The notes under the pieces were generated by a model. The model saw only the letters and a program-made list of their open reading frames with translations, ran no database searches and was not told the origin of the DNA. From sequence record NC_047880.1: a stretch of DNA of 64,000 nucleotides. One strand, 5' to 3'. The position numbers and the translations under genes are program-made. Positions 2,552 to 32,538 of this stretch are shown here, in pieces. Every line of letters begins with the position of its first letter. The stretch's first letter is position 1.

Positions 2552-5369
2552 GAAGGGCCCCGCCTTCACACTACGTCCTAAACGAATAGCTGCATTCGAT
2601 GCGCTGCTTGGTGACGACGTTGGTGTGGAGGAATCCTCAGACTTAGACTTCCTGTCTGATAATAATTCAAGCGGTATTAACTTCCTTGAGAAGGGCGAGA
2701 CAAACATTGTTGACTTGGTTGAGAGTGCTCTTGAACAGCGCACACTCGTACCACGCGACTTGAAGTTCGATGATAGCTCAATGCCTCGCGCAAAGAACTT
2801 CCTCGAATGGTGTACTAGCCCTGACTTCTTGAAAGCTGAACCGTATCTTGAGCAGGCCATGATCGGCCTTCGTTTGTTCGGAGAGATCTGTGTACGATGT
2901 TCCCCGAACTTGCAATGGCAACATACAGAAAACCACGAGCCGCAGGAAGGCGTCGCTGCTATTGAGAGGAATCTTCATCTTCTCCATAACGGTGTCTGCC
3001 CTCACTGCGGCGCTCGGCGTTCTGACATGATAAAAAAGGGAGAGATGAACTTCTACAACGAGCTGGCCGTGAATGCCGGACAACGTTGTGTTAGTGCTGC
3101 AACTCCTGTAACAACGCATAACGGTATCATGCCTATCGGTCATATGATGATTGGCCATGACAGCCCAGGCTTCCACAAGCCGCGTAACAAGTATCGTGCT
3201 CACAACGGACGTGAGATAAAGAAAGTCAGTCAAGTCTACGTGTCTACTGAAAGCCCGACACGTATCATTACGCTGTCTAATGGTATGCACTTAGAAGCAA
3301 CACACGAACATCCTCTGCGTACTGAAACAGGCTTTAAGAAAGCGCTTGTGATCACAGAAGGTGAACGTGTAGAAGTTGCTCTCGGTATAAACTCATGGGG
3401 CAAGATCATAACGCCTGTATCTATCTATGATGCTGGCCAGTCTACCCGTGAAGATGCCTTGCGTTATCTGACTGACAGATCGCTTCCGTTTAACAGCGGT
3501 TATATGTACGTCACTGACGACGAGAACGTTGCTCAGATGGCGTGGTCGATTCTGATTAACGCAGGCTACCTGCCGCAGATTAATCGTGACGACACGAAGA
3601 ACGAGTACAGCATTCTGTTTGATCTCAATGCAGAGTGTTTGAGACGTTCTGTGCATCTGCCTGTGATATCGAATGCAGAAGGTGAAACGAAAGTAACGTA
3701 TGACTTGCAGATGGAGGGCATGCCGCAGTTCGTGGCATCAGGTCTTATTCATCATAACAGCGGTAAGTCCGTTGTTGTTGCAATGATCTCAACGTATCTA
3801 ACGCATCGCCTGCTTATGTCGCAATCACCGACAGGCATCTTGGGTATCAGTAGCACAACTGTTCTTCACGGAACGTTCGTTGCTCTTACTCAGAAGCAAG
3901 CGTCTGATACACTGTGGACTCCGTACTTCAACTACGTGATGGGTAGTCCGTGGTTCCAAGCATATCATGATCTGATTCGCAGACACGAACGCAAGTTCGG
4001 TATTGAAGTGATGAAGGTTCGTGATACGTTCATTCTTTATGGTCATCGTAGTTTCGTTATTTATCCAGCAGGACCTGATGGTCGTATTCTTCGTGGTCGT
4101 ACACGTATACTCAGCGTAATCGACGAAGTGGCGTATTTCGACAACGACGCCCAATCCAAGAAAATCAAAGTCAGTGCCAACGCTGTATACGGAGCACTCG
4201 ACCGCTCACTCGCTACTGTTCGATCAGCAGAGAAGCGGCAAGTCGAGGCCGGATATGACGAAGCCTTCACGGGTTACTTCTGCAACATCAGTAGCCCGGT
4301 ACACGCTCGTGACAAAATCAACGAGCTGTTGCGTATGGCTTTAGGTAGTAAGACTCTGTTAGGCATTCATGCACCGACGTGGAAGATGAACCCAACCATG
4401 CCGCGTGATAGTGAGTTCCTGATAGAAGCATTCCGTCGTGACCCTGTAGGTGCAGCGCGTGACTATGGTGCAGAAGCTCCGTTGTCTGCAAGTCCATTCA
4501 TCACTCAGCCTACATTCATCTCAGATGCAATACGTGAGAAGGGTCGTAACCTGTGTCAGTACACGCATCATATCATTCGTCACAAAGACGGTGAGAGACA
4601 GCGTTACGGTAGTCTCGTTAAAGCTGCTTCGACAACTCGCGCTTCTATTCTCGCAATCGACGCAGGTTATTCGAATAACAGTTTTGCTTTGGTGACAGGC
4701 TCACGCGGTGATGATGGTATTATCAGCGTAGACTGTCTGGTTGAGATTGTGCCTAAGCCAGGTATACCTCTCAACTACACAATGATATTTGACGAACTGC
4801 TTATTCCTCTTTGTAAGTTGCGTAACGTGCGCGTGATGCTTGCCGACCAATGGCAGTCACTCAAGTTGCTACAGGATGCTAAACTCAAAGTTGAATCCAT
4901 CGAAGAATCTGATCAATACAGCCTGAAATATCAGGACATGTGGACAGTGAAGACGATGTTCGAATCGCAGCCGTCTCGCATTAGTTTGCCGCGCATGGTG
5001 AATACTAAGAATATCAATGAGACGTTGCAGTATGATGGTGATGAATATCCTCAGTGCTTTGAGAACAAGCCTACTGAACACTTGATCATGCAGTTGCAGA
5101 CAGTGCAAGATACTGGACGCAGCGTTATCAAGAACACAGGTGCAACAGATGACTTGTGGCGTGCAATGGCTCTCATGGTATACGGGTTCGAATGCGGTGA
5201 GTACGAAGACTACCTGATTAAAGCAGCGGAGACTTCTATCAACCGTGACCCGAATCGTCTTGGTCGTGTAGCGCACAGACTCAACTCAGGCACAGCAAGC
5301 ACAACACGCTCTGCTCTTCCTGGTCGAGTGCTAGGTTCAGCCGCTACTCGTATGCTTGGACGTAAGTAG
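2538..5369 (+). CDS. terL: terminase large subunit containing an intein
   Basis: After splicing Walker A reads NAGQR|SGKS; Walker B VIDEVAYF; coupling motif ISSP; RNase-H-like nuclease LAIDAG and terminal DDLWRA; followed by portal. Confidence 0.85.
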   Translation: MAKPKKGPAFTLRPKRIAAFDALLGDDVGVEESSDLDFLSDNNSSGINFLEKGETNIVDLVESALEQRTLVPRDLKFDDSSMPRAKNFLEWCTSPDFLKAEPYLEQAMIGLRLFGEICVRCSPNLQWQHTENHEPQEGVAAIERNLHLLHNGVCPHCGARRSDMIKKGEMNFYNELAVNAGQRCVSAATPVTTHNGIMPIGHMMIGHDSPGFHKPRNKYRAHNGREIKKVSQVYVSTESPTRIITLSNGMHLEATHEHPLRTETGFKKALVITEGERVEVALGINSWGKIITPVSIYDAGQSTREDALRYLTDRSLPFNSGYMYVTDDENVAQMAWSILINAGYLPQINRDDTKNEYSILFDLNAECLRRSVHLPVISNAEGETKVTYDLQMEGMPQFVASGLIHHNSGKSVVVAMISTYLTHRLLMSQSPTGILGISSTTVLHGTFVALTQKQASDTLWTPYFNYVMGSPWFQAYHDLIRRHERKFGIEVMKVRDTFILYGHRSFVIYPAGPDGRILRGRTRILSVIDEVAYFDNDAQSKKIKVSANAVYGALDRSLATVRSAEKRQVEAGYDEAFTGYFCNISSPVHARDKINELLRMALGSKTLLGIHAPTWKMNPTMPRDSEFLIEAFRRDPVGAARDYGAEAPLSASPFITQPTFISDAIREKGRNLCQYTHHIIRHKDGERQRYGSLVKAASTTRASILAIDAGYSNNSFALVTGSRGDDGIISVDCLVEIVPKPGIPLNYTMIFDELLIPLCKLRNVRVMLADQWQSLKLLQDAKLKVESIEESDQYSLKYQDMWTVKTMFESQPSRISLPRMVNTKNINETLQYDGDEYPQCFENKPTEHLIMQLQTVQDTGRSVIKNTGATDDLWRAMALMVYGFECGEYEDYLIKAAETSINRDPNRLGRVAHRLNSGTASTTRSALPGRVLGSAATRMLGRK
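3087..3758 (+). mobile_element. 224-aa intein in terminase Walker A, endonuclease degenerate
   Basis: Begins CVSAATPV (block A), has ATHEHPL (block B), ends GLIHHN followed by Ser +1; no intact LAGLIDADG pair. Confidence 0.9.
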
Positions 5370-5377
5370 GTTAGCTT

Positions 5378-5385
5378 AGTAATTT
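5378..5385 (+). promoter_or_regulatory. AGTAATTT motif upstream of Zn-ribbon/portal genes
   Basis: Intergenic; the motif recurs before several operons. Confidence 0.45.
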
Positions 5386-5415
5386 GAATGAGTTAACCTC
5401 AAGAGGATTTAAATC

Positions 5416-5628
5416 ATGACCAGATTCTACAACCCATTGCTTGAAACAACTGTAAAGTCACAGTCTAGCGCAGACAAGGTTAAGAGTGAGAGTTCAGCAT
5501 TCAATGTTGATAACCCGAACTTCTGTCCTAAGTGCGCTTCTGCAACTGTACCGACCAAGTTACTTGACGGCGAAGATGTTATGTATTGCACATCATGCCG
5601 CGTGAGTCTTGCTATTCCTTTGAAGTGA
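5416..5628 (+). CDS. small zinc-ribbon protein
   Basis: CPKC...CTSC pairs; GAGGA RBS. Confidence 0.7.
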   Translation: MTRFYNPLLETTVKSQSSADKVKSESSAFNVDNPNFCPKCASATVPTKLLDGEDVMYCTSCRVSLAIPLK

Positions 5629-5635
5629 GGTCAAA

Positions 5636-7576
5636 ATGGGCATTCGAGTAGGACGCCAACAAAACGGCGAATCACAAGAATCAAACAAGAAGAAAGAACG
5701 GTCAGCGACTGGTTCTGCTTCACTACCTCGCGCAGTCGGAGAAGCTATACGAAGCCAAAGCTCGAAGTCTCAGATGCGTTTTGTGTCAGAGTCTTCGGGC
5801 GCGGGTGCTTCTGCTGGTAACATGCAAGTAGGTACTGTCCCTCTTGATATCGACTTAGAGCCGATGATGGAAGGGATGGACTACGAGGCTGATGACCGAC
5901 AGCTTTTCAACGTCTATCGAGATATTTACCACTTCGACCCGATCTGCGGATCGTATGTCGATTTGTTCTCAACGCTTCCGTTCTCTGACGTTAGTTTCAG
6001 TGGTGCGAAAGACAGCGTACTCGAACCGTATTACGAAGTGAACGAACGTCTGTCACTGACAACCAGTATGCCTAACATCACAACTGATATTCAGGTTACT
6101 GGTGCGTTCTGTGGTTCGATGCTGTACAACAAAGATCGTAAGAAGTTCATCGATCTAATGACGCACCGCTACGATAACATTGACGTTACTCCAATCCCGT
6201 TCTTGTCGCAGGACCCGATGTTCGAACTGCGCATTCCACAGTACGTTAAGCAAGCCTTCGCAAAAGACGGCAAGCGCATTGACGCACTAAAGAAAGAACT
6301 CGGTCAGTCATTCGTTGATAAACTTGTTAACGATGTGACGATGGAGCTTGACCCGATTGGTACTATCTACATCCCGCGTAAAACATTCAGCTTCGGCGAA
6401 GGTATCTCTGTCTTCCGTCGCGTTCTGCCTATCTGGCTGATCGAAAAGAACCTGTATCGCGGTACGTTGATTGAATCCGGTCGTCGTCAACGTGGTATTC
6501 TTCACGCTCAGTTAGGTGATGGTGATCAGTGGGAACCTTCTCAAGAAGAGATGGACTTCATGACAGACCTGTTGCTGTCTGCTGATAGTGACCCAATCGG
6601 CTCGATCATCACAACACGTCTCGGCGTGAACATTAGTGAGTTCCGTCAGGGTGGGGACTTCTGGAAGATTACTGATATCTGGGACCAGACTGCTACATTC
6701 AAGATGCGAGCAATGGGTATCAGTGAAGCATTCCTTAGTGGTGAAGCGAACTATGATTCCGGTGCTGCTGGCCTGACGATTTTCGTTGAAGCTATGCGAG
6801 CGTTCCGTGATCATCTGACGCGCAAGATCTACTACGAGAAAGTATTCCCTGTTATCAGCCTGATGAATGGCCTTGCTGTTCAGCGTAACGGTAAGATCAT
6901 CAAGAAGAACGGTATGATGGACGGCGGTCTAACTGAAATCATGTACAGACTGAATGACGGCAGCAAGCTGTTTATTCCGAACGTACACTGGTCTAAGCAA
7001 CTGCGTCCTGACGTTGATCAGGCGATGATGGAAAACCTTCGTGCTATGACTGAGCTGGGTGTTCCTGTTCCGCTTCGTGCTATCGCTGCTGCTGGTGGTT
7101 ATAACTTTGATCAGATTCTCATGGATCAAGATGAAGACCTCGCAATGCGCCGTAAGATTATGGCGTATAAGAAACGCATGGCAGAAATCGACAAAGAGTT
7201 TGCTCTGCCTGAAGGTGGCGCAGAAGGTGCTGATAGTTTCAGTTCTGTTAGCTCTCTGTCTAAAGATGCGAAGCGCGATCTCAAACGCCGTCAGCAACAC
7301 ATCGCTGGTGTGGGTCTGTCAAGTGCTGTACTTGGCGGTGAACGTCGTAAAGGCTTGAAGCGCGACTACGGTGAGCACTCTGAAATCTTCGAAGTCGGTA
7401 AGACAGGTAAGAAGAAACACGTCTTCCGCCAGAACGTTGCTAACTCCAAAGCTAACGATGCAATCTGGAAAGCTGCGAAGAACTACGAAGCCAACAAAAC
7501 AATGCCGCTGGATAATGGTAAGGTATCATTCGAACCAACTCAGCAAGAAATTAGGGCAATGTCGAGGGTCCGTTAA
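5636..7576 (+). CDS. portal protein (T4 gp20-like)
   Basis: 646 aa, follows terL; GRRQRGILHAQLGD resembles the gp20 RAPERRIFYIDVGN segment. Confidence 0.65.
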   Translation: MGIRVGRQQNGESQESNKKKERSATGSASLPRAVGEAIRSQSSKSQMRFVSESSGAGASAGNMQVGTVPLDIDLEPMMEGMDYEADDRQLFNVYRDIYHFDPICGSYVDLFSTLPFSDVSFSGAKDSVLEPYYEVNERLSLTTSMPNITTDIQVTGAFCGSMLYNKDRKKFIDLMTHRYDNIDVTPIPFLSQDPMFELRIPQYVKQAFAKDGKRIDALKKELGQSFVDKLVNDVTMELDPIGTIYIPRKTFSFGEGISVFRRVLPIWLIEKNLYRGTLIESGRRQRGILHAQLGDGDQWEPSQEEMDFMTDLLLSADSDPIGSIITTRLGVNISEFRQGGDFWKITDIWDQTATFKMRAMGISEAFLSGEANYDSGAAGLTIFVEAMRAFRDHLTRKIYYEKVFPVISLMNGLAVQRNGKIIKKNGMMDGGLTEIMYRLNDGSKLFIPNVHWSKQLRPDVDQAMMENLRAMTELGVPVPLRAIAAAGGYNFDQILMDQDEDLAMRRKIMAYKKRMAEIDKEFALPEGGAEGADSFSSVSSLSKDAKRDLKRRQQHIAGVGLSSAVLGGERRKGLKRDYGEHSEIFEVGKTGKKKHVFRQNVANSKANDAIWKAAKNYEANKTMPLDNGKVSFEPTQQEIRAMSRVR

Positions 7577-7914
7577 TGTATCGCTTTCAAACATGTCCTG
7601 TTGAAGGTGAAGCGACGAGGGTGGTGTATCGCCACCCTAACTTCTCCGATTATGGTCTTGCGTTAAACGTTGATCGTGATGGTGAGCAGGATTCCATTAC
7701 GTGTAACATCGTTACTGGTGTAATTGATGGTCAGTCAAAGCTTGAAATACTGACGGATCACTCAGTTCCGCTTGATGTGCAAATCTGGGCTTTTGCAGCC
7801 ATGAACCGCATACGCAATTCTGTAAATACAGATAGCAGTCTCAATCTTGATGCGCTATTCCCAAACAATGGCGGCATCTTATATTATACCGTAAATCAGG
7901 AGAGTACATCGTGA
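7576..7914 (+). CDS. hypothetical protein
   Basis: TAATG coupling to portal stop. Confidence 0.6.
   Translation: MYRFQTCPVEGEATRVVYRHPNFSDYGLALNVDRDGEQDSITCNIVTGVIDGQSKLEILTDHSVPLDVQIWAFAAMNRIRNSVNTDSSLNLDALFPNNGGILYYTVNQESTS
7819..7828 (+). promoter_or_regulatory. CTGTAAATA motif
   Basis: Recurrent motif; here intragenic, about 85 nt upstream of the next start. Confidence 0.3.
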
Positions 7915-12640: not shown

Positions 12641-13411
12641 ATGAGCAATGTAGATAAAACAATGCCTCAAGGTAAGTGGGAATTCAACGAGCCTGTTGCT
12701 GCTGTGTTTGATAACATGCTGGCCAACTCTATTCCTTCTTATGACCGTATGCGTGACCTGACGTTTCGTCTGGGTAAACGTTTCGTAACACCAGGCTCAG
12801 CTATTGTTGATCTCGGTGCATCACTCGGTCGTGCTATCGAACCATTCTGTGAACACTTCGGTCCGTACATGTATCATCATGCAGCAGACCGTCCTGAACC
12901 TGATTCTGAAACAGGCAATCTCTATTCGCTGTATGAGACTGCTCCTGCAATGCGTGAGCGTCTCGCACAGAACGCAGTGTTGAACGCAGCCGAAGCGAAA
13001 CTCGAATCAGAATCGCTTGTGGACGTTGATACGTTCCGTTTCAGTGAGCAAGTCGAATGCTCTTTGATTCTCAGCGTGTTAACTTTGCAGTTCACTCCGA
13101 TTGAACACCGTCAGCACATTCTGGAAAAGGTCTATGACTCTTTGCAGTCTGGTGGTGCATTCATTCTCGTTGAGAAAGTTCTCGGGGATGATAATTATCT
13201 GGACAAGCTGCTGGTAGATACCTACTACAGCATGAAAGGTGATAACGGTTATTCACAAGAAAGCATTGCGACTAAGCGCAAGTCACTCGAAGGTGTTCTC
13301 GTTCCAGTGAAAGCCGCGTGGAATGAAGAACTGCTCCGTAAAGCGGGCTTCAATCGCGTCGAATGTTTCTATCGCGATCTCAACTTTGCAGGTTGGATTG
13401 CTGTTAAATAA
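12641..13411 (+). CDS. cmoA: CmoA-like carboxy-S-adenosylmethionine synthase
   Basis: WEFNEPVAAVFDNMLANSIPSY matches CmoA N-terminus [42 protein letters not shown] with Arg213 (codon 13277) aligning to E. coli catalytic R199. Confidence 0.85.
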   Translation: MSNVDKTMPQGKWEFNEPVAAVFDNMLANSIPSYDRMRDLTFRLGKRFVTPGSAIVDLGASLGRAIEPFCEHFGPYMYHHAADRPEPDSETGNLYSLYETAPAMRERLAQNAVLNAAEAKLESESLVDVDTFRFSEQVECSLILSVLTLQFTPIEHRQHILEKVYDSLQSGGAFILVEKVLGDDNYLDKLLVDTYYSMKGDNGYSQESIATKRKSLEGVLVPVKAAWNEELLRKAGFNRVECFYRDLNFAGWIAVK

Positions 13412-13436: not shown

Positions 13437-14309
13437 ATGAGTTCTACAGCGGCCATACGCGAGAAAGTTCGCTCGGCATTATTTGCGAGTCATAACAAGC
13501 CTGTCGATATGCGACAAGCGTTGATGGACACTTTGAGTTGGATTCCGAAAGAAGACCAAGTTACTGTGTTCATGTCGGGTGGCATTGATAGTCATGCTTG
13601 CTTGTTTGCTTGCATCGACCTAGGCCTCAAAGTTAACGTGCTGTCGTTCACACTCGACTCACACGAAAGCTCTGACTTCAAGGCAGCGAGACACGCAGCC
13701 GAAGTTTTCGACCTTGACTTCACGCCGATTGTTCTTCCAACGAACGAAGCCCATCTGAAAAGCTGGGTACGTTTCGCAGTACACAAGCTCGGGCTCACGA
13801 ACAAAAGTGAGATCGAATGTTCTTGGCCGCTGTACACCGCAATCCGTCATCTTGAAGGAAAGACCAAACATATCGTACTCGGTCTTGGCGGCGACTCGTA
13901 CTTCTTAATGGCAAAGAGCGCTTCGATGCACTGCAAAGACTTAGTGTTAGAGCAACGTCGAAAAGCTACGCGCCGTGTGCTGTCTCAGAACGTTCTCGTT
14001 AAGCGTGAAGCTTTTGCTCGTGGTATCTACGCGCATCTTCCGTACTTCGAGTTCGGTCGCACTTACGCAGAGCTGCAAATGGAAACCGACTTTAAAAAGA
14101 TCAACAGTCCGCAGAAGTCGTTTTACAATCAGGCATTCCCTGAGTATCGCAAGCGCTGTAAAGTACGCGGCCACCAAAACTTCCAGCTGGGTGACACTAA
14201 CATTAGCGGCATCTTTAGCGACGTGTTGTTGAAGTCCGACTGGAACACAAGAAACTTGAAAGCAATCGTTGGCGTATACAATGACGTTGCATCAGGAATC
14301 TGTAAATAG
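13437..14309 (+). CDS. PP-loop ATP pyrophosphatase, asparagine-synthetase C-terminal-like; probable amide ligase (CmoY-like)
   Basis: FMSGGIDS PP-loop; LGLGGDSYF resembles GEGADELF; no glutaminase domain; adjacent to cmoA. Confidence 0.75.
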   Translation: MSSTAAIREKVRSALFASHNKPVDMRQALMDTLSWIPKEDQVTVFMSGGIDSHACLFACIDLGLKVNVLSFTLDSHESSDFKAARHAAEVFDLDFTPIVLPTNEAHLKSWVRFAVHKLGLTNKSEIECSWPLYTAIRHLEGKTKHIVLGLGGDSYFLMAKSASMHCKDLVLEQRRKATRRVLSQNVLVKREAFARGIYAHLPYFEFGRTYAELQMETDFKKINSPQKSFYNQAFPEYRKRCKVRGHQNFQLGDTNISGIFSDVLLKSDWNTRNLKAIVGVYNDVASGICK

Positions 14310-14316
14310 TAATTTG
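14297..14316 (+). promoter_or_regulatory. overlapping CTGTAAATA and AGTAATTT motifs upstream of the DPA peptide
   Basis: AATCTGTAAATAGTAATTTG, 60 nt before ATG 14376. Confidence 0.55.
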
Positions 14317-14375
14317 AGTAAGCACTGATAATCAGTCTGCTCTTAACATAAACCCAAATCCTTAAGGAGCGCATC

Positions 14376-14525
14376 ATGCGTCATATCGACCCAGCAGTAC
14401 GTTTTAACGATCCAGCCATCACTGACCCAGCAGCCCGTTTCGATCCGGCCGACCCTGCTGATCCAGCAATCGGTTTTGATCCGGCTGACCCAGCAGATCC
14501 TGCTGACCCGGCTGCTCGCTTCTAA
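14376..14525 (+). CDS. 49-aa Asp-Pro-Ala repeat peptide (below ORF-track cutoff)
   Basis: MRHIDPAVRFNDPAITDPAARFDPADPADPAIGFDPADPADPADPAARF; AAGGAG RBS 14364-14369; synonymous codon variation across repeats; terminator downstream. Confidence 0.85.
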   Translation: MRHIDPAVRFNDPAITDPAARFDPADPADPAIGFDPADPADPADPAARF

Positions 14526-14541
14526 TAGCGAAACTTAATAC

Positions 14542-14570
14542 AAGGGGGCTGCTCATTGCAGTCCCTTTTT
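14542..14570 (+). terminator. Rho-independent terminator
   Basis: AAGGGGGCTGC-TCATT-GCAGTCCCTTTTT. Confidence 0.8.
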
Positions 14571-14593
14571 ACTTTCCTGTTGAGGAACGTGCT

Positions 14594-15232
14594 ATGTCTT
14601 TTGAGCTTGTAAACATTCTGCCGATACTGTCGCAATCAACTACAGTTCATCGTGCAGCCGACGGCACTGATGTTCACATCGTCCGAAACTTCTTCACACA
14701 TACGGAATGCGAAGCACTAATCGCTGAGGGCATTCAGTATCTCGAACCGAGCCGTGTTGGTGGACCGAACGATACAACTAAGATCGATAAAACAGTTCGC
14801 TCGTCCTCTACTGCGATGTTAAGCGAAGTATCTCAACACCCTGCTGTACTCGAAGCTATTCGTCGCATTGATGACGCATACGGTTACCCACATCTGTTCA
14901 GCAACCCGCTGCAACTCAATCGCTATCAAGTCGGTGAAGAGTTCGTAGCGCATCACGACTGGCATGACCCTGTTCGCCAGCATGATCGTATTCAACGTGA
15001 AGGCCAACGCACTTGGACCTTCTTGATGTACCTCAACGATGACTTCGAAGGCGGTCAGACTGAATTCCCGTTGATGGATCTCACAGTAACTCCTGAGCGC
15101 GGTATGCTTGTTCTGTGGAACAACTTGCTTGTTGACGGTTCAGTCAATGAGACAACGCTACACGCATCGAAGCCTGTAACGTCAGGTACGAAGTTCATGA
15201 TGACCAAATGGTTTAAGAACAAAGTGCTGTGA
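14594..15232 (+). CDS. 2OG-Fe(II) oxygenase, prolyl-4-hydroxylase-like
   Basis: LQLNRY-x-x-G-x-x-F-x-x-HHD (HxD), TFLMYLND-x-x-EGGQTEFP, LHASKPVTSGTKF; Lys as the 2OG ligand, as in P4Hs. Confidence 0.9.
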   Translation: MSFELVNILPILSQSTTVHRAADGTDVHIVRNFFTHTECEALIAEGIQYLEPSRVGGPNDTTKIDKTVRSSSTAMLSEVSQHPAVLEAIRRIDDAYGYPHLFSNPLQLNRYQVGEEFVAHHDWHDPVRQHDRIQREGQRTWTFLMYLNDDFEGGQTEFPLMDLTVTPERGMLVLWNNLLVDGSVNETTLHASKPVTSGTKFMMTKWFKNKVL

Positions 15233-15323: not shown

Positions 15324-15932
15324 ATGATAGTTCGTATTATTGACGGAGATATTGGTGCGACGTATGTTGCCGAGCAACTGCAAGCTGCTGGCATTGAATG
15401 TACAGTGCATTCACCAAACAATCCCCGTGCTCGTGCGCGTTATGCGCCTTATCCTTCTATGTCTATTAGTCTTGACCAGCTTCTTATCGAGCGTCACATC
15501 GGTGATGTACTCGGTACGTATCGCGGTATCTTCCTGATTAGTAGCTATGCAGGTTCTTTGATTGCAAACAGCATGATTGATCTTTGTGGTCAGTCCAACA
15601 ATATCATTACGTGTGATAAACTCGACTGCGGTAATGTTCCTGTTGCAGCCACCAAGCTTTCTGTAAATATCTATCAGAAGCAGCGCAAGCTGGCTCGCAT
15701 CGCTCGTCGTGTTCCGCACTATGAGTCCGACCATGAGTTTATCATTGCGGATAATACGGTTCAGGCTCTCTCGTATCCAGAGCTAGTACAGAAAGAAGAT
15801 ATCGAACTTAACAACAAGCCGAAGTTTCTTTCTAGTCCTTCGCTGATCGTTGCTGCAAAGCGTCTGGGTATTAAAAGCAACACGTACCATAACTATGCCG
15901 GCCTTGTGAAAGAGTTTCTCGCCGCGCGGTAA
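15324..15932 (+). CDS. hypothetical protein with degenerate Rossmann-like N-terminus
   Basis: VRIIDGDIGATYVAEQLQAAGIECTVH resembles a beta-alpha-beta dinucleotide fold; GAGGA RBS. Confidence 0.6.
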   Translation: MIVRIIDGDIGATYVAEQLQAAGIECTVHSPNNPRARARYAPYPSMSISLDQLLIERHIGDVLGTYRGIFLISSYAGSLIANSMIDLCGQSNNIITCDKLDCGNVPVAATKLSVNIYQKQRKLARIARRVPHYESDHEFIIADNTVQALSYPELVQKEDIELNNKPKFLSSPSLIVAAKRLGIKSNTYHNYAGLVKEFLAAR

Positions 15933-16211: not shown

Positions 16212-16670
16212 ATGATGAACCTGTTTTCTATTCTGAAACAGCAAGTGAAGAAATCGCTGACGACAGAAGCAGCGCTCGAACCAGAAGTACGCGCACTGTT
16301 TGACTGGCGTTACTCTGTAGACGTCAAAGGTCAGATGTACATCATCGGTAAGACTGGCGCGAACACCTGCTTCTATATCGAACCGGGGACAGTTGAGCCT
16401 ACCGCATGTTATCCTGATGCGTTGCTGGCAAAAATTGACGAGTGGGGAACAGCGAAATATGTTTCCTACTCCGTGTTCTTCAAGCACTTCGATAGTCCTG
16501 TTGCAGAGAATATCAAGACGCTTGAGAAAGCACAGACGGGTAAGCCGAAGAAGTTTAAGAAGGGTTACTTCATCTGTGGTCTGACGCCGAAAGGCAAACG
16601 TGTGAAGTTGTTCAGACTGCAACAGGGTCTGAGCGGTATGCAATGGGTTGCAGTGGAGCCTAAGAAATAA
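16212..16670 (+). CDS. hypothetical protein
   Basis: GAGG RBS; basic C-terminus. Confidence 0.6.
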   Translation: MMNLFSILKQQVKKSLTTEAALEPEVRALFDWRYSVDVKGQMYIIGKTGANTCFYIEPGTVEPTACYPDALLAKIDEWGTAKYVSYSVFFKHFDSPVAENIKTLEKAQTGKPKKFKKGYFICGLTPKGKRVKLFRLQQGLSGMQWVAVEPKK

Positions 16671-16684
16671 TGTAGGAGAGTACG

Positions 16685-17183
16685 ATGAAACAACAACTGC
16701 TTGATCGTGGCTTCGACCACGAACGATATCATTGCTGGTTAAGTGAGACACAGATGACTGTGCCTCTATTCGGATTTGATCGTCAACTTCATGGCGTTCA
16801 AGTCTACACACCAGACGCACCGAAACAAACGTCGAATCCGAAAGATGCTCGTTACTTCACGCGCACGTTCGGTGGCAAGCAGTTGGTGTGGGGAACAGAA
16901 ATTGAACCTATACGGGTCGACCGTATTCTTAACTGAGTCCGTGTTCAAGGCATGTGCTGTTCATCGTCTTGGACTCAACGCTTGGTCTGTATTAGGTTCT
17001 AATGTCAACGATGCTCTGTACCTTCAACTGCGTCTGCTTGGCCTGAGATTTGTCTGTCTCGGTGATGCGGATAAAGCTGGTGAAGAGTTCAGTCAAACGT
17101 TTGGTCTTGGTGCAGTATCAAAAGACCTTGACGAAATGACTGACGCAGAGCTACTGGATTTAACTCGTCCTTTCTTGAGGTAA
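16685..17183 (+). pseudogene. Toprim-domain primase-like gene split by a frameshift near 16890-16901
   Basis: Frame A gives VPLFG...RYFT...LVWGTE; the +1 frame continues LNLYGSTVFLTESVFKA...GDADKAG...KDLDEM. Confidence 0.7.
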
Positions 17184-29702: not shown

Positions 29703-30407
29703 ATGGCAAAAATTGCTAAAGCAAAAGCAAAGGACGGGAAAAAGAAAGGCGCTATGGCTATTGATTTGAAATCTTTCAAGTCGGCTAAACAGCTTAAAGG
29801 CGCTAAGTACAATCCACGTTTCATTACAGACAGTCGCTTGAGCGCACTCGAAAGTTCGTTGGGTAGCTTCGGTGACTTGTCTGGCATCGTGTTTAACAAC
29901 AGCGTCAGTTCAGGCGTTCTTATCTCCGGTCACCAGCGTCTCAAGTCCATCAACGATTGGGAAACGCGCATCGAACTCCAGCCTACTTCTGACAAGTACG
30001 GTACAGTCGCTTTGGGTTACGTTCATGCAACGCATCCGAAGTCGAGCAAGACGATTAGCATTCCTCTGCGTATCGTAAACTGGAACGATAAGAAAGCCGA
30101 GTACGCTGCGAACATTGCTGCGAATGCGCACGGCGGTGAGTTCGATAACAAGAAGCTTGCGAATCTGGTTGAGAAACTTGACCTGACTTCAATCAAGCCT
30201 CAACTGCTCGGACTCGACCCGCTGGAAATCCGTGGTCTGCAACAGAAGCTGAAATCACAAGCACTTGTTGAAGGCGAGAAACGCGCAGGCAAAACTACTG
30301 GTCAGATGAACGGTAGTACGGGCGCATTCAAAGAATACACACCAGATGAAGTCGGCGATAAGCTGTCATGCACCTGCCCACGCTGTGGATTTAAGTTCGA
30401 GGGATAA
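29703..30407 (+). CDS. ParB/sulfiredoxin-like N-terminal domain protein with C-terminal Zn ribbon
   Basis: KYNPR...SFG...IVFN...LISGHQRL; ends CTCPRCGFKF. Confidence 0.8.
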   Translation: MAKIAKAKAKDGKKKGAMAIDLKSFKSAKQLKGAKYNPRFITDSRLSALESSLGSFGDLSGIVFNNSVSSGVLISGHQRLKSINDWETRIELQPTSDKYGTVALGYVHATHPKSSKTISIPLRIVNWNDKKAEYAANIAANAHGGEFDNKKLANLVEKLDLTSIKPQLLGLDPLEIRGLQQKLKSQALVEGEKRAGKTTGQMNGSTGAFKEYTPDEVGDKLSCTCPRCGFKFEG

Positions 30408-30408
30408 T

Positions 30409-32538
30409 ATGATCATCAAGCCGCCTACAATGAAAGAGATCAACGCGCAAGACAACAAGTGGCGTGGCATGAGCTTCTTCGCAGGCTGTGGTGGTTCTTC
30501 TACCGGTCTCAAATGGGCCGGTATTAACATCATCTTGAGTAATGAGTTCGTAGACGTGGCGCGTGAGTCTTATCAAGCGAACCACCCATCTACGTTAGTT
30601 CTCCCTCACGATATCCGTCGTCTCGACCCGAAGAAGATTATGCAGCACTTCGGGATGGGTAAGGGTGAACTTGATTTCCTCGATGGTAGCCCACCATGCT
30701 TCACTGAGAACACTCTGATTCACACTGCTGAGGGGATGAAGTTCATCTCTGATGTTAATGTCGGCGACATGGCAATGACTTCTGTTGGTCGTTATCATGA
30801 AGTGTACGATACTATGGTGCGTCCTTATGTTGGTACGATGCACAAGATCGAAACACTGCTCGGCTCGAACAACGCAACGCCTGAGCATCCGTTCTTCATT
30901 CGCCGCGTTCAACCTACTGGCTTGTGGTCTGAACCGTTCTGGTGTGATGCGAAAGATGTACAAGAAGGTGATTTACTCTCAACACCTCGAACAACTCCAG
31001 ACATGGGCGCTGACGCTTATCATGGTCAAATGTCATTGCTGACGCCTGTCATTCAGAGCTGGGTAACTTACCCTGAGTTCTGGTGGGCTATCGGTCATTG
31101 GTGTGCGCACGGTACACTTGAAGTTGTGCAGGGTGTCGATGTTGTTAGCTTCGAATCACACACAGCTCAGGAAAACGATCTGATTGAGCAGGTGTTTGAT
31201 GTTCTGAAAATCAGTAGCATCAACAGCGTAGACACAACCGTTGATCAGCGCAAGACCTATCGCGTTGTCATGGATTCAGAACTGTTCGCGTTCCTGAGCA
31301 AGTTCGTGGCACAGGGTAAGAACAACCTGTCTCGTCGTCTGCCGTCGATGATCTTCCACTTAGCTACTGAACTGAAACAGCAATTTATTCTCGGCTATCT
31401 CGGTCGTGACTACGTTAGTGCAATGGGCATGAGCCAGTTAATCAGCACAGACAACCGTCGCTTCCTCGCTGAGATGAATTACCTGACGTGCTCTGCATTC
31501 AACAGACCTCTGTTCGATGGTATGTTGTTCTCTGATGTGAACTACGGTTCAGCGCTTACGCCTCGTGATCGTAATCAGAAGAAAGAACATGTTGGTTATC
31601 TGCTGCTGCAAGATGAAAACAATTTCTTCTACGAGTTTAACGATAACGATCCACATCTGTGGGTTCAAGTGATCGAGAACCTCGCGTATCAGACAACCTG
31701 TGACGTGTACAACTTCTCAGTCAGTGAAGACGAGACGTATGTGGCGAACAGCATTGTCGTGCATAACTGCAAAGGCTTCTCGACGGCTGGCGTGAAAGAA
31801 GAAGGTTGGGGTAAAGAAGTCAAGTACAGCGAGAACAAGAAACAGCAGGTTGATGACCTGTTCGATCAGTATTGCCGTATGATCAGTGGCTTCCAGCCTA
31901 AAGTGTTCACAGCGGAAAACGTCAGTGGTCTTGTGAAGGGATCTTCTAAAGGTTACTTCCTTGAGATCATGAAAACGTTTGACGAGCTGGGCTACTATGT
32001 CAAAGCACCGTTGATTAACAGTGCATGGCTTGGTGTTCCACAGTCGCGTGAACGTATCATCTTCATGGGTGTGCGCAAAGACGTTGCACATGCGTTGGGT
32101 TATCGCTCAATCGGTACTGCTGTGCCTGCTGTCGTGCCTGCTTCTAGCATGGCTGTGCTTGCTGATGCTCTGCCTAACATTCTGCGATACAAATCGGCTG
32201 AGAAAGATATCATTAAGTATAAGCCCGCGATGAACGGACCTATGCCTACGATAACTGCTGCTGATGCGATTGCGTATGAGACGGCACGATTCTCTTCTGC
32301 TGGGTTTATCGAAGACAACAAGGGCATTCGTCGTAAGCTTACGATTGATGAACTGAAAGTTGTTTCCGGTCTACCTGCTGATTACAAGCTGGTCGGTAAG
32401 TTCGAACAACAGTGGGAACGTCTCGGTCGTATCTGCGTACCTCACATGACTCATGCTGCTGCGACTGCGTTGATCAATCATATTCTTGTGCCTTACGCCA
32501 AGAAGAAGAAACAGAAACCGGGCGCTCTCTTCCGTTAG
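30409..32538 (+). CDS. C5-cytosine DNA methyltransferase homologue with intein; probable carboxymethyltransferase (CmoX-like)
   Basis: FFAGCGG (I), GSPP|C (IV), AENVSG (VI), QSRERIIF (VIII), motif X reads LGRICVP in place of GN(A/S)VP. Confidence 0.85.
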   Translation: MIIKPPTMKEINAQDNKWRGMSFFAGCGGSSTGLKWAGINIILSNEFVDVARESYQANHPSTLVLPHDIRRLDPKKIMQHFGMGKGELDFLDGSPPCFTENTLIHTAEGMKFISDVNVGDMAMTSVGRYHEVYDTMVRPYVGTMHKIETLLGSNNATPEHPFFIRRVQPTGLWSEPFWCDAKDVQEGDLLSTPRTTPDMGADAYHGQMSLLTPVIQSWVTYPEFWWAIGHWCAHGTLEVVQGVDVVSFESHTAQENDLIEQVFDVLKISSINSVDTTVDQRKTYRVVMDSELFAFLSKFVAQGKNNLSRRLPSMIFHLATELKQQFILGYLGRDYVSAMGMSQLISTDNRRFLAEMNYLTCSAFNRPLFDGMLFSDVNYGSALTPRDRNQKKEHVGYLLLQDENNFFYEFNDNDPHLWVQVIENLAYQTTCDVYNFSVSEDETYVANSIVVHNCKGFSTAGVKEEGWGKEVKYSENKKQQVDDLFDQYCRMISGFQPKVFTAENVSGLVKGSSKGYFLEIMKTFDELGYYVKAPLINSAWLGVPQSRERIIFMGVRKDVAHALGYRSIGTAVPAVVPASSMAVLADALPNILRYKSAEKDIIKYKPAMNGPMPTITAADAIAYETARFSSAGFIEDNKGIRRKLTIDELKVVSGLPADYKLVGKFEQQWERLGRICVPHMTHAAATALINHILVPYAKKKKQKPGALFR
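30697..31767 (+). mobile_element. 357-aa intein inserted at the catalytic Pro-Cys; degenerate LAGLIDADG blocks
   Basis: Starts CFTENTLI; ATPEHPF block B; ends VYNFSV...IVVHN then Cys +1; WAIGHWCAHG and FILGYLGRD are decayed endonuclease motifs. Confidence 0.9.

Follow-up and report, generated by a model that had tools for sequence, protein, structure and literature searches.

The window analysed here, the first 64 kb of the Erwinia amylovora jumbo phage vB_EamM_Y3 (NC_047880/KY984068, 100% identity), contains a small gene, gp019, at 14376-14525, which encodes a 49-amino-acid (aa) peptide with ten Asp-Pro-Ala (DPA) units and a net charge of -6. The gene is located between gp018 (13437-14309), encoding a stand-alone carboxylate-adenylating ligase of the asparagine-synthetase type (PP-loop, SGGxDS) that belongs to the CmoY family, and gp020 (14594-15232), encoding a 212-aa single-domain homologue of the collagen-type peptidyl prolyl 4-hydroxylases (P4Hs) with a 2OG-FeII_Oxy_3 domain. 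The genes gp017-gp021, gp023, gp049 and gp050 and the expression signals of gp019 all lie on the plus strand. In an earlier note, made from the nucleotide sequence alone, the peptide was described as unannotated and as flanked by a carboxylate-activating ligase and a prolyl-hydroxylase-like enzyme. The translation of 14376-14525 agrees exactly with the peptide given there and both neighbours are as described, but the gene is already listed in public records as a hypothetical protein (HOS33_gp019 / YP_009794193.1). We propose that gp019 and gp020 are most likely an accessory module of the Y3 CmoA/CmoX/CmoY-type DNA hypermodification system.

The gp019 gene and its expression signals

The ten DPA units of gp019 are written in eight different 9-nucleotide (nt) versions (GAC/GAT, CCA/CCG/CCT and GCA/GCC/GCT), and all pairwise differences among them (88/88) fall in the third codon position, with none in positions 1 or 2. 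Tandem Repeats Finder detected imperfect periods of 27 and 36 nt only, with 66-81% match. Because the differences are exclusively silent and the DNA periods imperfect, the repeat is maintained at the protein level and not by recent DNA slippage. In a six-frame translation of the window the DPA triplet is found 15 times, ten of them inside gp019. No family match for the peptide was detected in Pfam or PHROGs. The selection on the peptide that the earlier note had read from the codon usage is thus upheld by the silent variation in Y3 and, in other phages, by conservation of the protein despite different codons and repeat units. On these comparisons gp019 is almost certainly translated and functional.

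Three types of expression signal surround the gene. A phage promoter-like motif, CTGTAAATA (14300-14308) followed by TAATTTGAG (14300-14318 for the two together), overlaps the gp018 stop codon. In its general form, CTGTAAAKA or (A)ATCTGTAAATA, the motif is present in 11 copies in the window versus 1.07 expected, with 11/11 on the plus strand (positions 7820, 10452, 14300, 15285, 15661, 18581, 21967, 29660, 34954, 38682 and 43006), mostly 25-80 nt 5' of start codons. Since CTGTAAATA is also located upstream of gp021, the Dam methylase gene and the ParB-CmoX gene pair, it probably represents a phage-specific promoter class. A ribosome-binding site (RBS), AAGGAG (14364-14369), precedes the ATG by 6 nt, and an intrinsic-terminator-like hairpin with a T-run (14542-14573, 11-bp stem at 14542-14568) lies between gp019 and gp020; the hairpin begins 17 nt past the gp019 stop codon and folds independently in both the minimum free energy (MFE) and the centroid RNA structures of 14330-14580. 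The strong RBS and the intrinsic terminator are therefore both present as reported in the earlier note. Of promoter-like motifs upstream, the phage motif at 14300 was found; a sigma-70 consensus was not found directly upstream of gp019. Among the 12 lineages compared below, the core CTGTAAA is located 5' of the peptide gene in ten (Y3 included, i.e., in 9/11 of the others), GGAG, GAGG or AGGA is found at equal spacing before the peptide ATG in 12/12, and a GC-rich hairpin is present 3' of the peptide stop codon in 12/12. This agrees with the proposal that gp019 forms its own expression unit, and the same signals suggest that it would be highly expressed.

Conservation of the peptide and its association with the hydroxylase

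Locus contexts were gathered from IMG/VR, NCBI, ENA, JGI and Logan contigs, ten of them in addition to phages Y3 and Yoloswag (contigs are designated L plus a number). In 12/12 contexts with a full-length hydroxylase homologue (Y3, Yoloswag, L227, L228, L229, L222, L209/L210, L230, L211, L231, L232 and L233), an open reading frame (ORF) of 22-54 aa with Pro repeats, up to 11 of them, is located between the ligase and hydroxylase genes. A peptide is present in a 13th context, L240, in which the locus is truncated by the contig end. The gp019 counterpart in phage pEp_SNUABM_52 differs by one substitution, I4T, and Yoloswag carries a DPA peptide of 44 aa at this position, with a ligase 89% and a hydroxylase 65% identical to those of Y3. 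The repeat unit is DPA in Y3, Yoloswag, L227, L228, L229, L222 and L209/L210, DPE in L230, EPE in L211, NPEI in L231, APEI in L232, NPER/NPEN in L233, and EPSMT in L240. The conserved DPA ORF and synteny that the earlier note suggested looking for in relatives were thus found as a repeat peptide in the ligase-hydroxylase slot throughout, although the unit is not always DPA.

All 102 prolines in 14 peptides have Asp or Glu at position -1 or +1 (102/102), and the Pro-Pro count is zero. Asp is favoured before proline (D-P) and Glu after it (P-E), and the ratio of proline to acidic residues is exactly 1:1 in nine lineages. The net charge of the peptides ranges from -3 to -10 and the repeat periods are 3, 4 or 6-12 residues. 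The residues that survive across the family are therefore proline and the adjacent Asp/Glu, which supports the link to both neighbouring enzymes drawn in the earlier note.

Other searches were less productive. A tblastn search of gp019 against the phage collection yielded only Y3 and a near-identical relative, since its repeats are masked by the filter for low complexity. A degenerate DNA pattern for (DPA)3 detected approximately 120 loci in IMG/VR, almost all of them unrelated low-complexity segments within large proteins or frames that are not coding, and the only relevant ones were Y3, Yoloswag and L148 (= L209). Scans with a ligase profile found one peptide-less locus in metagenome contigs and none in genome contigs. 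One apparent relative with both enzymes and no peptide, Salmonella phage Sen-NF, would have counted against the proposal of the earlier note but was rejected as an exception: its record (PV359490; L224-L226, 108.5 kb, "complete genome") consists of concatenated coding sequences (CDSs) with 0-nt spacers, from which small genes and the DNA between genes have been lost, and the peptide is present in a genuine contig belonging to this lineage. The record of Alcaligenes phage Afa-NA1 (PV550095; L236-L237, 78 kb, "complete genome") is likewise a concatenated or partial CDS set. The phage behind both records is a Y3-like jumbo phage, and since the records are concatenated or partial, absences in them are not evidence.

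Presence of the hydroxylase and presence of the Pro repeats coincide without exception: 12 lineages have both, three have neither, and none has one alone. The three clade members without hydroxylase (L219, L238 and L239) all lack Pro repeats and all keep the ligase, with every invariant residue and ordinary branch lengths; the ligase therefore has a core function independent of the peptide. In L219 a DUF1611 gene (4899-5975) is located 5' of the ligase gene. In L238 (3885-4109) and L239 (3301-3569) the promoter motif, a strong RBS and the terminator are retained around a mini-ORF of 7-8 aa (MRNDKNPF and MQDNSAW), which may be either functional or a relic, and which is followed by an unrelated 244-aa protein (no Pfam or PHROGs match for the one in L238).

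The peptide gene keeps its two neighbours through several gene orders. The order is CmoA-ligase-peptide-P4H in Y3, Yoloswag and L227; ParB-CmoX-ligase-peptide-P4H-CmoA in L209 and, with one more gene between P4H and CmoA, in L231 and L232; and ParB-CmoX-CmoA-ligase-peptide-P4H in L211, L230 and L233 (with a chorismate mutase gene between CmoX and CmoA in L233). In L222, L228 and L229 the ligase-peptide-P4H trio has been relocated as a unit to a position 3' of a RecA/UvsX-like gene. That gene encodes 820-827 aa, far above the usual RecA size (L222 4519-6987; L228 2497-4959; L229 2482-4965), and it probably contains an intein, the PF00154 match covering the N-terminal part only. The idea that this RecA lineage has no cmo system, so that the cassette would be independent of 5-carboxymethylcytosine (5cxmC), was rejected: the records are partial, and the sister phage Afa-NA1 encodes a CmoA with 60% identity to that of Y3. 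Among the lineages compared, we found none whose cassette demonstrably occurs in the absence of a cmo system.

The flanking enzymes and the 5-carboxymethylcytosine gene set

The assignment of gp020 is well supported. It matches PF13640 with E=1.6e-15 (58 bits, cut-off 27), and a gp020 profile searched against PDB gave ten matches, all of them peptidyl prolyl hydroxylases (10/10), including the B. anthracis P4H (3ITQ/5HV0; E=1.1e-34, residues 13-208), the human collagen P4H (C-P4H) alpha-2 subunit (7ZSC; E=8.8e-28), the Chlamydomonas P4H (2JIG/3GZE; E=1.5e-25) and the P4H of virus PBCV-1 (5C5T; E=2.9e-20). Residues H120, D122, H190 and K200 do not vary among 12 clade members and correspond in the alignment to H-x-D, H and K in the enzyme of B. 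anthracis; gp020 retains the Fe(II)-binding triad HxD...H and the 2-oxoglutarate-binding Lys. Like the PBCV-1, B. anthracis and Chlamydomonas P4Hs, gp020 aligns over its full length, carries the HxD...H...K set and stands alone at about 210 aa, and like them it is expected to act on extended Pro-rich repeats; the PBCV-1 P4H accepts Pro-rich repeat peptides. It differs from these enzymes in that its presumed substrate is a dedicated mini-gene of 22-54 aa immediately 5', in that every proline is flanked by an acidic residue and not arranged as X-Pro-Gly, Ser-Pro or PAPK, and in that the gp019/gp020 pair is embedded in a DNA-modification locus. Close gp020 homologues share contigs with ligase homologues, and no adjoining acid-Pro mini-ORF was found at approximately 160 more distant viral P4H-like loci from two scans of viral contigs including IMG/VR.

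The 290-aa gp018 product matches Pfam Asn_synthase and QueC and has the PP-loop SGGIDS. In tblastn it matches CmoY of Synechococcus phage S-B43 at 27% identity (E=4e-14). A search of PDB sequences with the ligase profile gave a weak QueC match only and a fold search was therefore needed: the AlphaFold2 model (predicted local distance difference test, pLDDT, 93) resembles the synthetase domains of beta-lactam synthetase, AsnB and carbapenam synthetase with template modelling (TM) scores of 0.6-0.7. The ligases that accompany a peptide group together in a single, strongly supported clade with a long stem, apart from SpCmoY and from the PaBG, Alexandravirus-type and Yersinia phage ligases, so gp018 need not be specific for glycine as the amine. 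Related jumbo phages differ greatly in what occupies the slot next to the ligase; in pEa_SNUABM_3 (Alexandravirus, L002 5823-9920) it holds a 420-aa protein, a DUF1611 protein and an alanine-racemase-like protein, and in L219 DUF1611 alone. This suggests that different phages use different amino-acid-type amine donors, as amino-acid-type enzymes would be expected in the slot if it served amine-donor supply.

Two more components complete the set. The CmoA-like carboxy-S-adenosylmethionine (carboxy-SAM) synthase gene gp017 (12641-13411, so annotated in GenBank) adjoins gp018 and is 28% identical to the S-B43 CmoA region (E=2e-17); CmoA homologues adjoin the cassette in most lineages. Farther downstream, gp049 (29703-30407) encodes a ParB-like protein, the usual partner of CmoX, and gp050 (30409-32538) an intein-interrupted, CmoX-like C5-cytosine (carboxy)methyltransferase in which both the SPPC motif and an R350 equivalent are present. 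The GSPPC and ERLGR segments of gp050 align with S95-C98 and R350 of SpCmoX, and are also found in the methyltransferases of L209, L230, L231 and L233. The association of ParB-like proteins with CmoX has been described, and the SPPC motif together with the R350-equivalent Arg are the criteria for CmoX (PMC12783734). From the homologies of gp017, gp018 and gp050, Y3 therefore holds a full CmoA/CmoX/CmoY gene set. The gp050 intein is inserted exactly at the catalytic Cys of SPPC (…GSPP|CFTENT…VVHN|CKGFS…). The 765-aa methyltransferase of the metagenomic jumbo phage L211 (2628-4925) is split at the same Cys.

Hypermodification by 5cxmC was first described in late 2025, with several ligase clusters whose amine substrates are unidentified, and SpCmoY of S-B43 was shown experimentally to ligate glycine to 5cxmC in DNA (PMC12783734). 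The Y3 locus resembles the S-B43 system in having CmoA, a ParB-adjacent C5-methyltransferase with SPPC and the R350 equivalent, and a ligase homologous to SpCmoY. It differs in three respects: a gene-encoded Pro-repeat peptide and a prolyl 4-hydroxylase, neither of which is mentioned in PMC12783734, are added; the Y3-clade ligase is on a long separate branch, and its amine need not be the glycine used in S-B43; and the Y3 CmoX gene is intein-split and located 16 kb away.

Three further genes or gene pairs in the window deserve mention. The 202-aa gp021 protein (15324-15932; no Pfam or PHROGs match) has homologues 3' of the ligase (SNUABM_2 type) or 3' of the hydroxylase (L227) in related Erwinia jumbo phages and a more distant homologue near the locus in Yersinia phage fHe-Yen9-02; whether it is part of the pathway is uncertain. 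The gp023 protein (16212-16670; phrog_23597, approximately 150 aa) is encoded in all cmo loci examined (Y3, Yoloswag, PaBG, L209, L211, L219 and L230-L233), with or without the peptide, which makes it a candidate for a further component of the 5cxmC system. The DNA primase in the window is annotated as two overlapping ORFs, gp024 (16685-16936) and gp025 (16902-17183); the overlap may stem from a frameshift or a programmed shift, or the gene may be split. Outside Y3, the chorismate mutase (PF01817) of L233, a 293-kb phage contig, is encoded at 3718-4161, and it would supply prephenate, the co-substrate of the carboxy-SAM synthase.

Possible roles of the peptide

The best supported part of our interpretation is that gp019 is the dedicated substrate of the hydroxylase, which we consider probable because the gp020 family, the invariant prolines and the joint presence and loss with the hydroxylase all point to it. 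More tentatively, we propose that the hydroxylated peptide gives rise to a hydroxyproline-bearing amine that the ligase would join to carboxymethylated DNA. That the gp019 product feeds the ligase and DNA modification in this way is our leading reading, although somewhat less likely than not; the peptide and hydroxylase would specify the amine of the ligase, since a homologue of the ligase acts on 5cxmC-DNA, the ligase survives without the peptide, and the slot beside it is hypervariable. In the proposed pathway, CmoA would produce carboxy-SAM and the intein-containing CmoX would add the carboxymethyl group to cytosine C5 to form 5cxmC. The peptide would be made in abundance from a promoter of its own, the terminator ahead of gp020 being leaky, and gp020 would hydroxylate proline in each [D/E/N/A]-P-[A/E] unit. 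The gp018 ligase would then adenylate the 5cxmC carboxylate and couple it to the peptide-derived amine carrying hydroxyproline (Hyp), which might be small, either free Hyp or an X-Hyp piece cut out by host peptidases, or else the entire peptide, joined by the amine at its N-terminus. For a small donor consumed stoichiometrically, a strongly expressed precursor with many copies of the unit would be well suited. A small Hyp compound as the donor is possible rather than likely.

Attachment of the whole hydroxylated peptide by its N-terminus to 5cxmC, which would cover the phage DNA with rigid polyanionic "bristles" and would make the 7-8-aa mini-ORFs of L238 and L239 a minimal form of the donor, is improbable, and the comparative data do not extend that far. 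The earlier note had offered three hypotheses for the peptide, i.e., a RiPP-like precursor (ribosomally synthesized and post-translationally modified peptide), a peptide ligated to DNA, and a hydroxyprolinated peptide or decoy; the comparative data favour the hydroxylation step of the third and a link to the 5cxmC pathway.

Several observations weigh against a DNA-directed role. The N-terminal amine is the only amine common to all the peptides, and no dedicated protease was found in the Y3 window; a Zn-metalloprotease-like gene near some cmo loci, which is also present in the peptide-less PaBG, is absent from the window. A free-proline hydroxylase would be a simpler route to Hyp, and the 1:1 pairing of proline and carboxylate is not needed by a model with Hyp as the donor and would better fit a ligase acting on Asp/Glu of the peptide itself. 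All ligases with a peptide beside them fall into a single clade, so the synteny may reflect a single acquisition followed by inheritance and not repeated selection. Lastly, the records of the RecA lineage, which are partial, yielded no CmoX.

The pairing of prolines with acidic residues leads to the strongest alternative, that gp019 yields a free RiPP-like peptide on which both enzymes act as tailoring enzymes: the hydroxylase would make Hyp, the ligase would adenylate the adjacent Asp/Glu for amidation, esterification or cyclisation, and the end product would be, for example, an anti-defence effector or a decoy for the carboxymethyl-amide epitope. One carboxylate neighbours each proline, and thus each repeat would offer one site per enzyme; in chemical terms the side chain of Asp is itself a carboxymethyl group and so resembles the known substrate of the ligase family. 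Asparagine-synthetase homologues that adenylate peptide carboxylates include the lasso peptide cyclases and peptidoglycan amidotransferases, and RiPP operons typically have a leaky terminator between the precursor gene and the genes for tailoring. Relocation of the trio as a unit and the long stem separating the ligase clade from the glycine-ligating CmoY also speak for this alternative. The locus does have a short precursor gene adjoining tailoring enzymes, and a comparable combination is known from pantocin A (precursor PaaP, adenylating PaaA and 2-oxoglutarate oxygenase PaaB); cyanobactins and pearlin-type scaffold peptides are further examples of multi-core precursors and RiPP-derived products. 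Like pantocin A and the multi-core RiPPs, Y3 has a short precursor with a repeated core flanked by an adenylating enzyme and a 2-oxoglutarate oxygenase, with a hairpin between the precursor gene and a tailoring gene; unlike them, its adenylating enzyme comes from a family shown to act on DNA, and its host genome is that of a lytic jumbo phage.

We nevertheless regard the RiPP alternative as unlikely, for three lineages devoid of Pro repeats still have the ligase, its invariant residues intact and its branch of unremarkable length. A leader could comprise no more than the 3-5 residues ahead of the first repeat, and the cassette shows no recognisable dedicated protease or exporter (RiPP recognition element, RRE, domains were not searched for specifically). 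The acid may lie on either side of proline (D-P or P-E), which is awkward for a single mode of recognition by the ligase; the sister loci indicate small-molecule amine donors; and the phage DNA would remain bare 5cxmC. The features of lasso peptide systems, a cyclase of approximately 550-650 aa with an N-terminal domain, a B protease/RRE, and Asp/Glu at positions 7-9 after the leader, were not found: gp018 consists of a 290-aa synthetase domain and nothing more, a B protein was not detected, and the first acidic residue is at position 3-8 of the unprocessed peptide. There is also some likeness to the microcin C-type peptidyl-carboxymethyl-cytidine "Trojan horse" antibiotics (reference 24 of PMC12783734), which share a ribosomal peptide, a CmoA-type synthase and carboxymethylated cytosine with the Y3 locus, and differ from it in a ThiF/MccB-type adenylyltransferase, a heptapeptide ending in Asn and a nucleotide target instead of DNA. 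No MccB homologue was seen here.

Rather more doubtful is a second alternative, in which the peptide acts as a free polyanionic polyproline-II (PPII) rod, an abundant, rigid, hydroxylated acidic mimic of nucleic acid that blocks a DNA-binding defence of the host, for example a modification-dependent nuclease, the proximity of the ligase being historical. The negative charge, the regular acid-Pro repeats and the signals for strong expression would suit such a role. Acid-Pro repeats form extended rods in TonB and the procyclins, 4-hydroxyproline stabilises PPII, and phages with modified DNA carry inhibitors of modification-dependent nucleases, e.g., Arn and IPI* of T4. The repeat periods, however, vary by lineage, so no fixed charge geometry is conserved, and some of the peptides are as short as 22 aa. 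The tight linkage to the ligase has also outlasted several rearrangements of the locus, and no other viral P4H-like gene examined in IMG/VR has such a neighbour.

It is very unlikely that gp019 is a regulatory leader whose translation controls terminator read-through into gp020, by attenuation or translational coupling, and whose peptide has no function of its own. The layout would fit, with a short ORF and a terminator directly 5' of gp020 in an arrangement kept in all lineages, and attenuator leaders, too, are conserved in their amino acids and not in their DNA. However, the MFE and centroid folds of 14330-14580 show no antiterminator pairing as an alternative, and peptides of 22-54 aa with up to 11 repeats are long for a leader. 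The pairing of proline with acid and the perfect co-loss with the hydroxylase better fit an enzyme and its substrate, and a prolyl hydroxylase is not an amino-acid biosynthesis gene in need of such sensing. Although the ORF is short, of low complexity and without a family match, a chance ORF in a DNA repeat with no product is effectively refuted by the comparative data, given that the variation within the gene is all silent, that an RBS, a promoter motif and a terminator are present, and that frame and motif are kept across lineages with different codons and repeat units.

A look for published chemical data on Y3 DNA gave none. Full-text literature searches found neither a peptide nor a prolyl hydroxylase described for cmo loci, and no account of hydroxyproline in the DNA of phages, in agreement with the statement in the earlier note that no such system was known to be described. 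The cmo hypermodification itself is already known; what is new here is a cmo locus with a gene-encoded peptide and a P4H as accessories. The logic would also be new, in that a DNA-modification locus of a phage contains, besides a prolyl hydroxylase, the gene for a ribosomal peptide that is sacrificed or can be attached. Should the RiPP alternative be true, the peptides would constitute a new family of phage RiPP-like products, and should the whole peptide be attached to DNA, this would be ribosomally templated DNA hypermodification and the first natural programmed DNA-peptide conjugate, serving as anti-restriction camouflage. If the pathway proposed here is true, in which hydroxylated gp019 provides the amine for the ligase, hydroxyproline (or a peptide) would join the natural chemistry of DNA, gp020 would be a rare viral P4H with a genetically defined substrate, and CmoX, the ligase and the encoded peptide would form a compact set for programmable DNA-peptide or DNA-amino-acid conjugation. 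The cassette is thus a concrete candidate for the source of one of the missing amines of the CmoY-type ligase clusters (PMC12783734).

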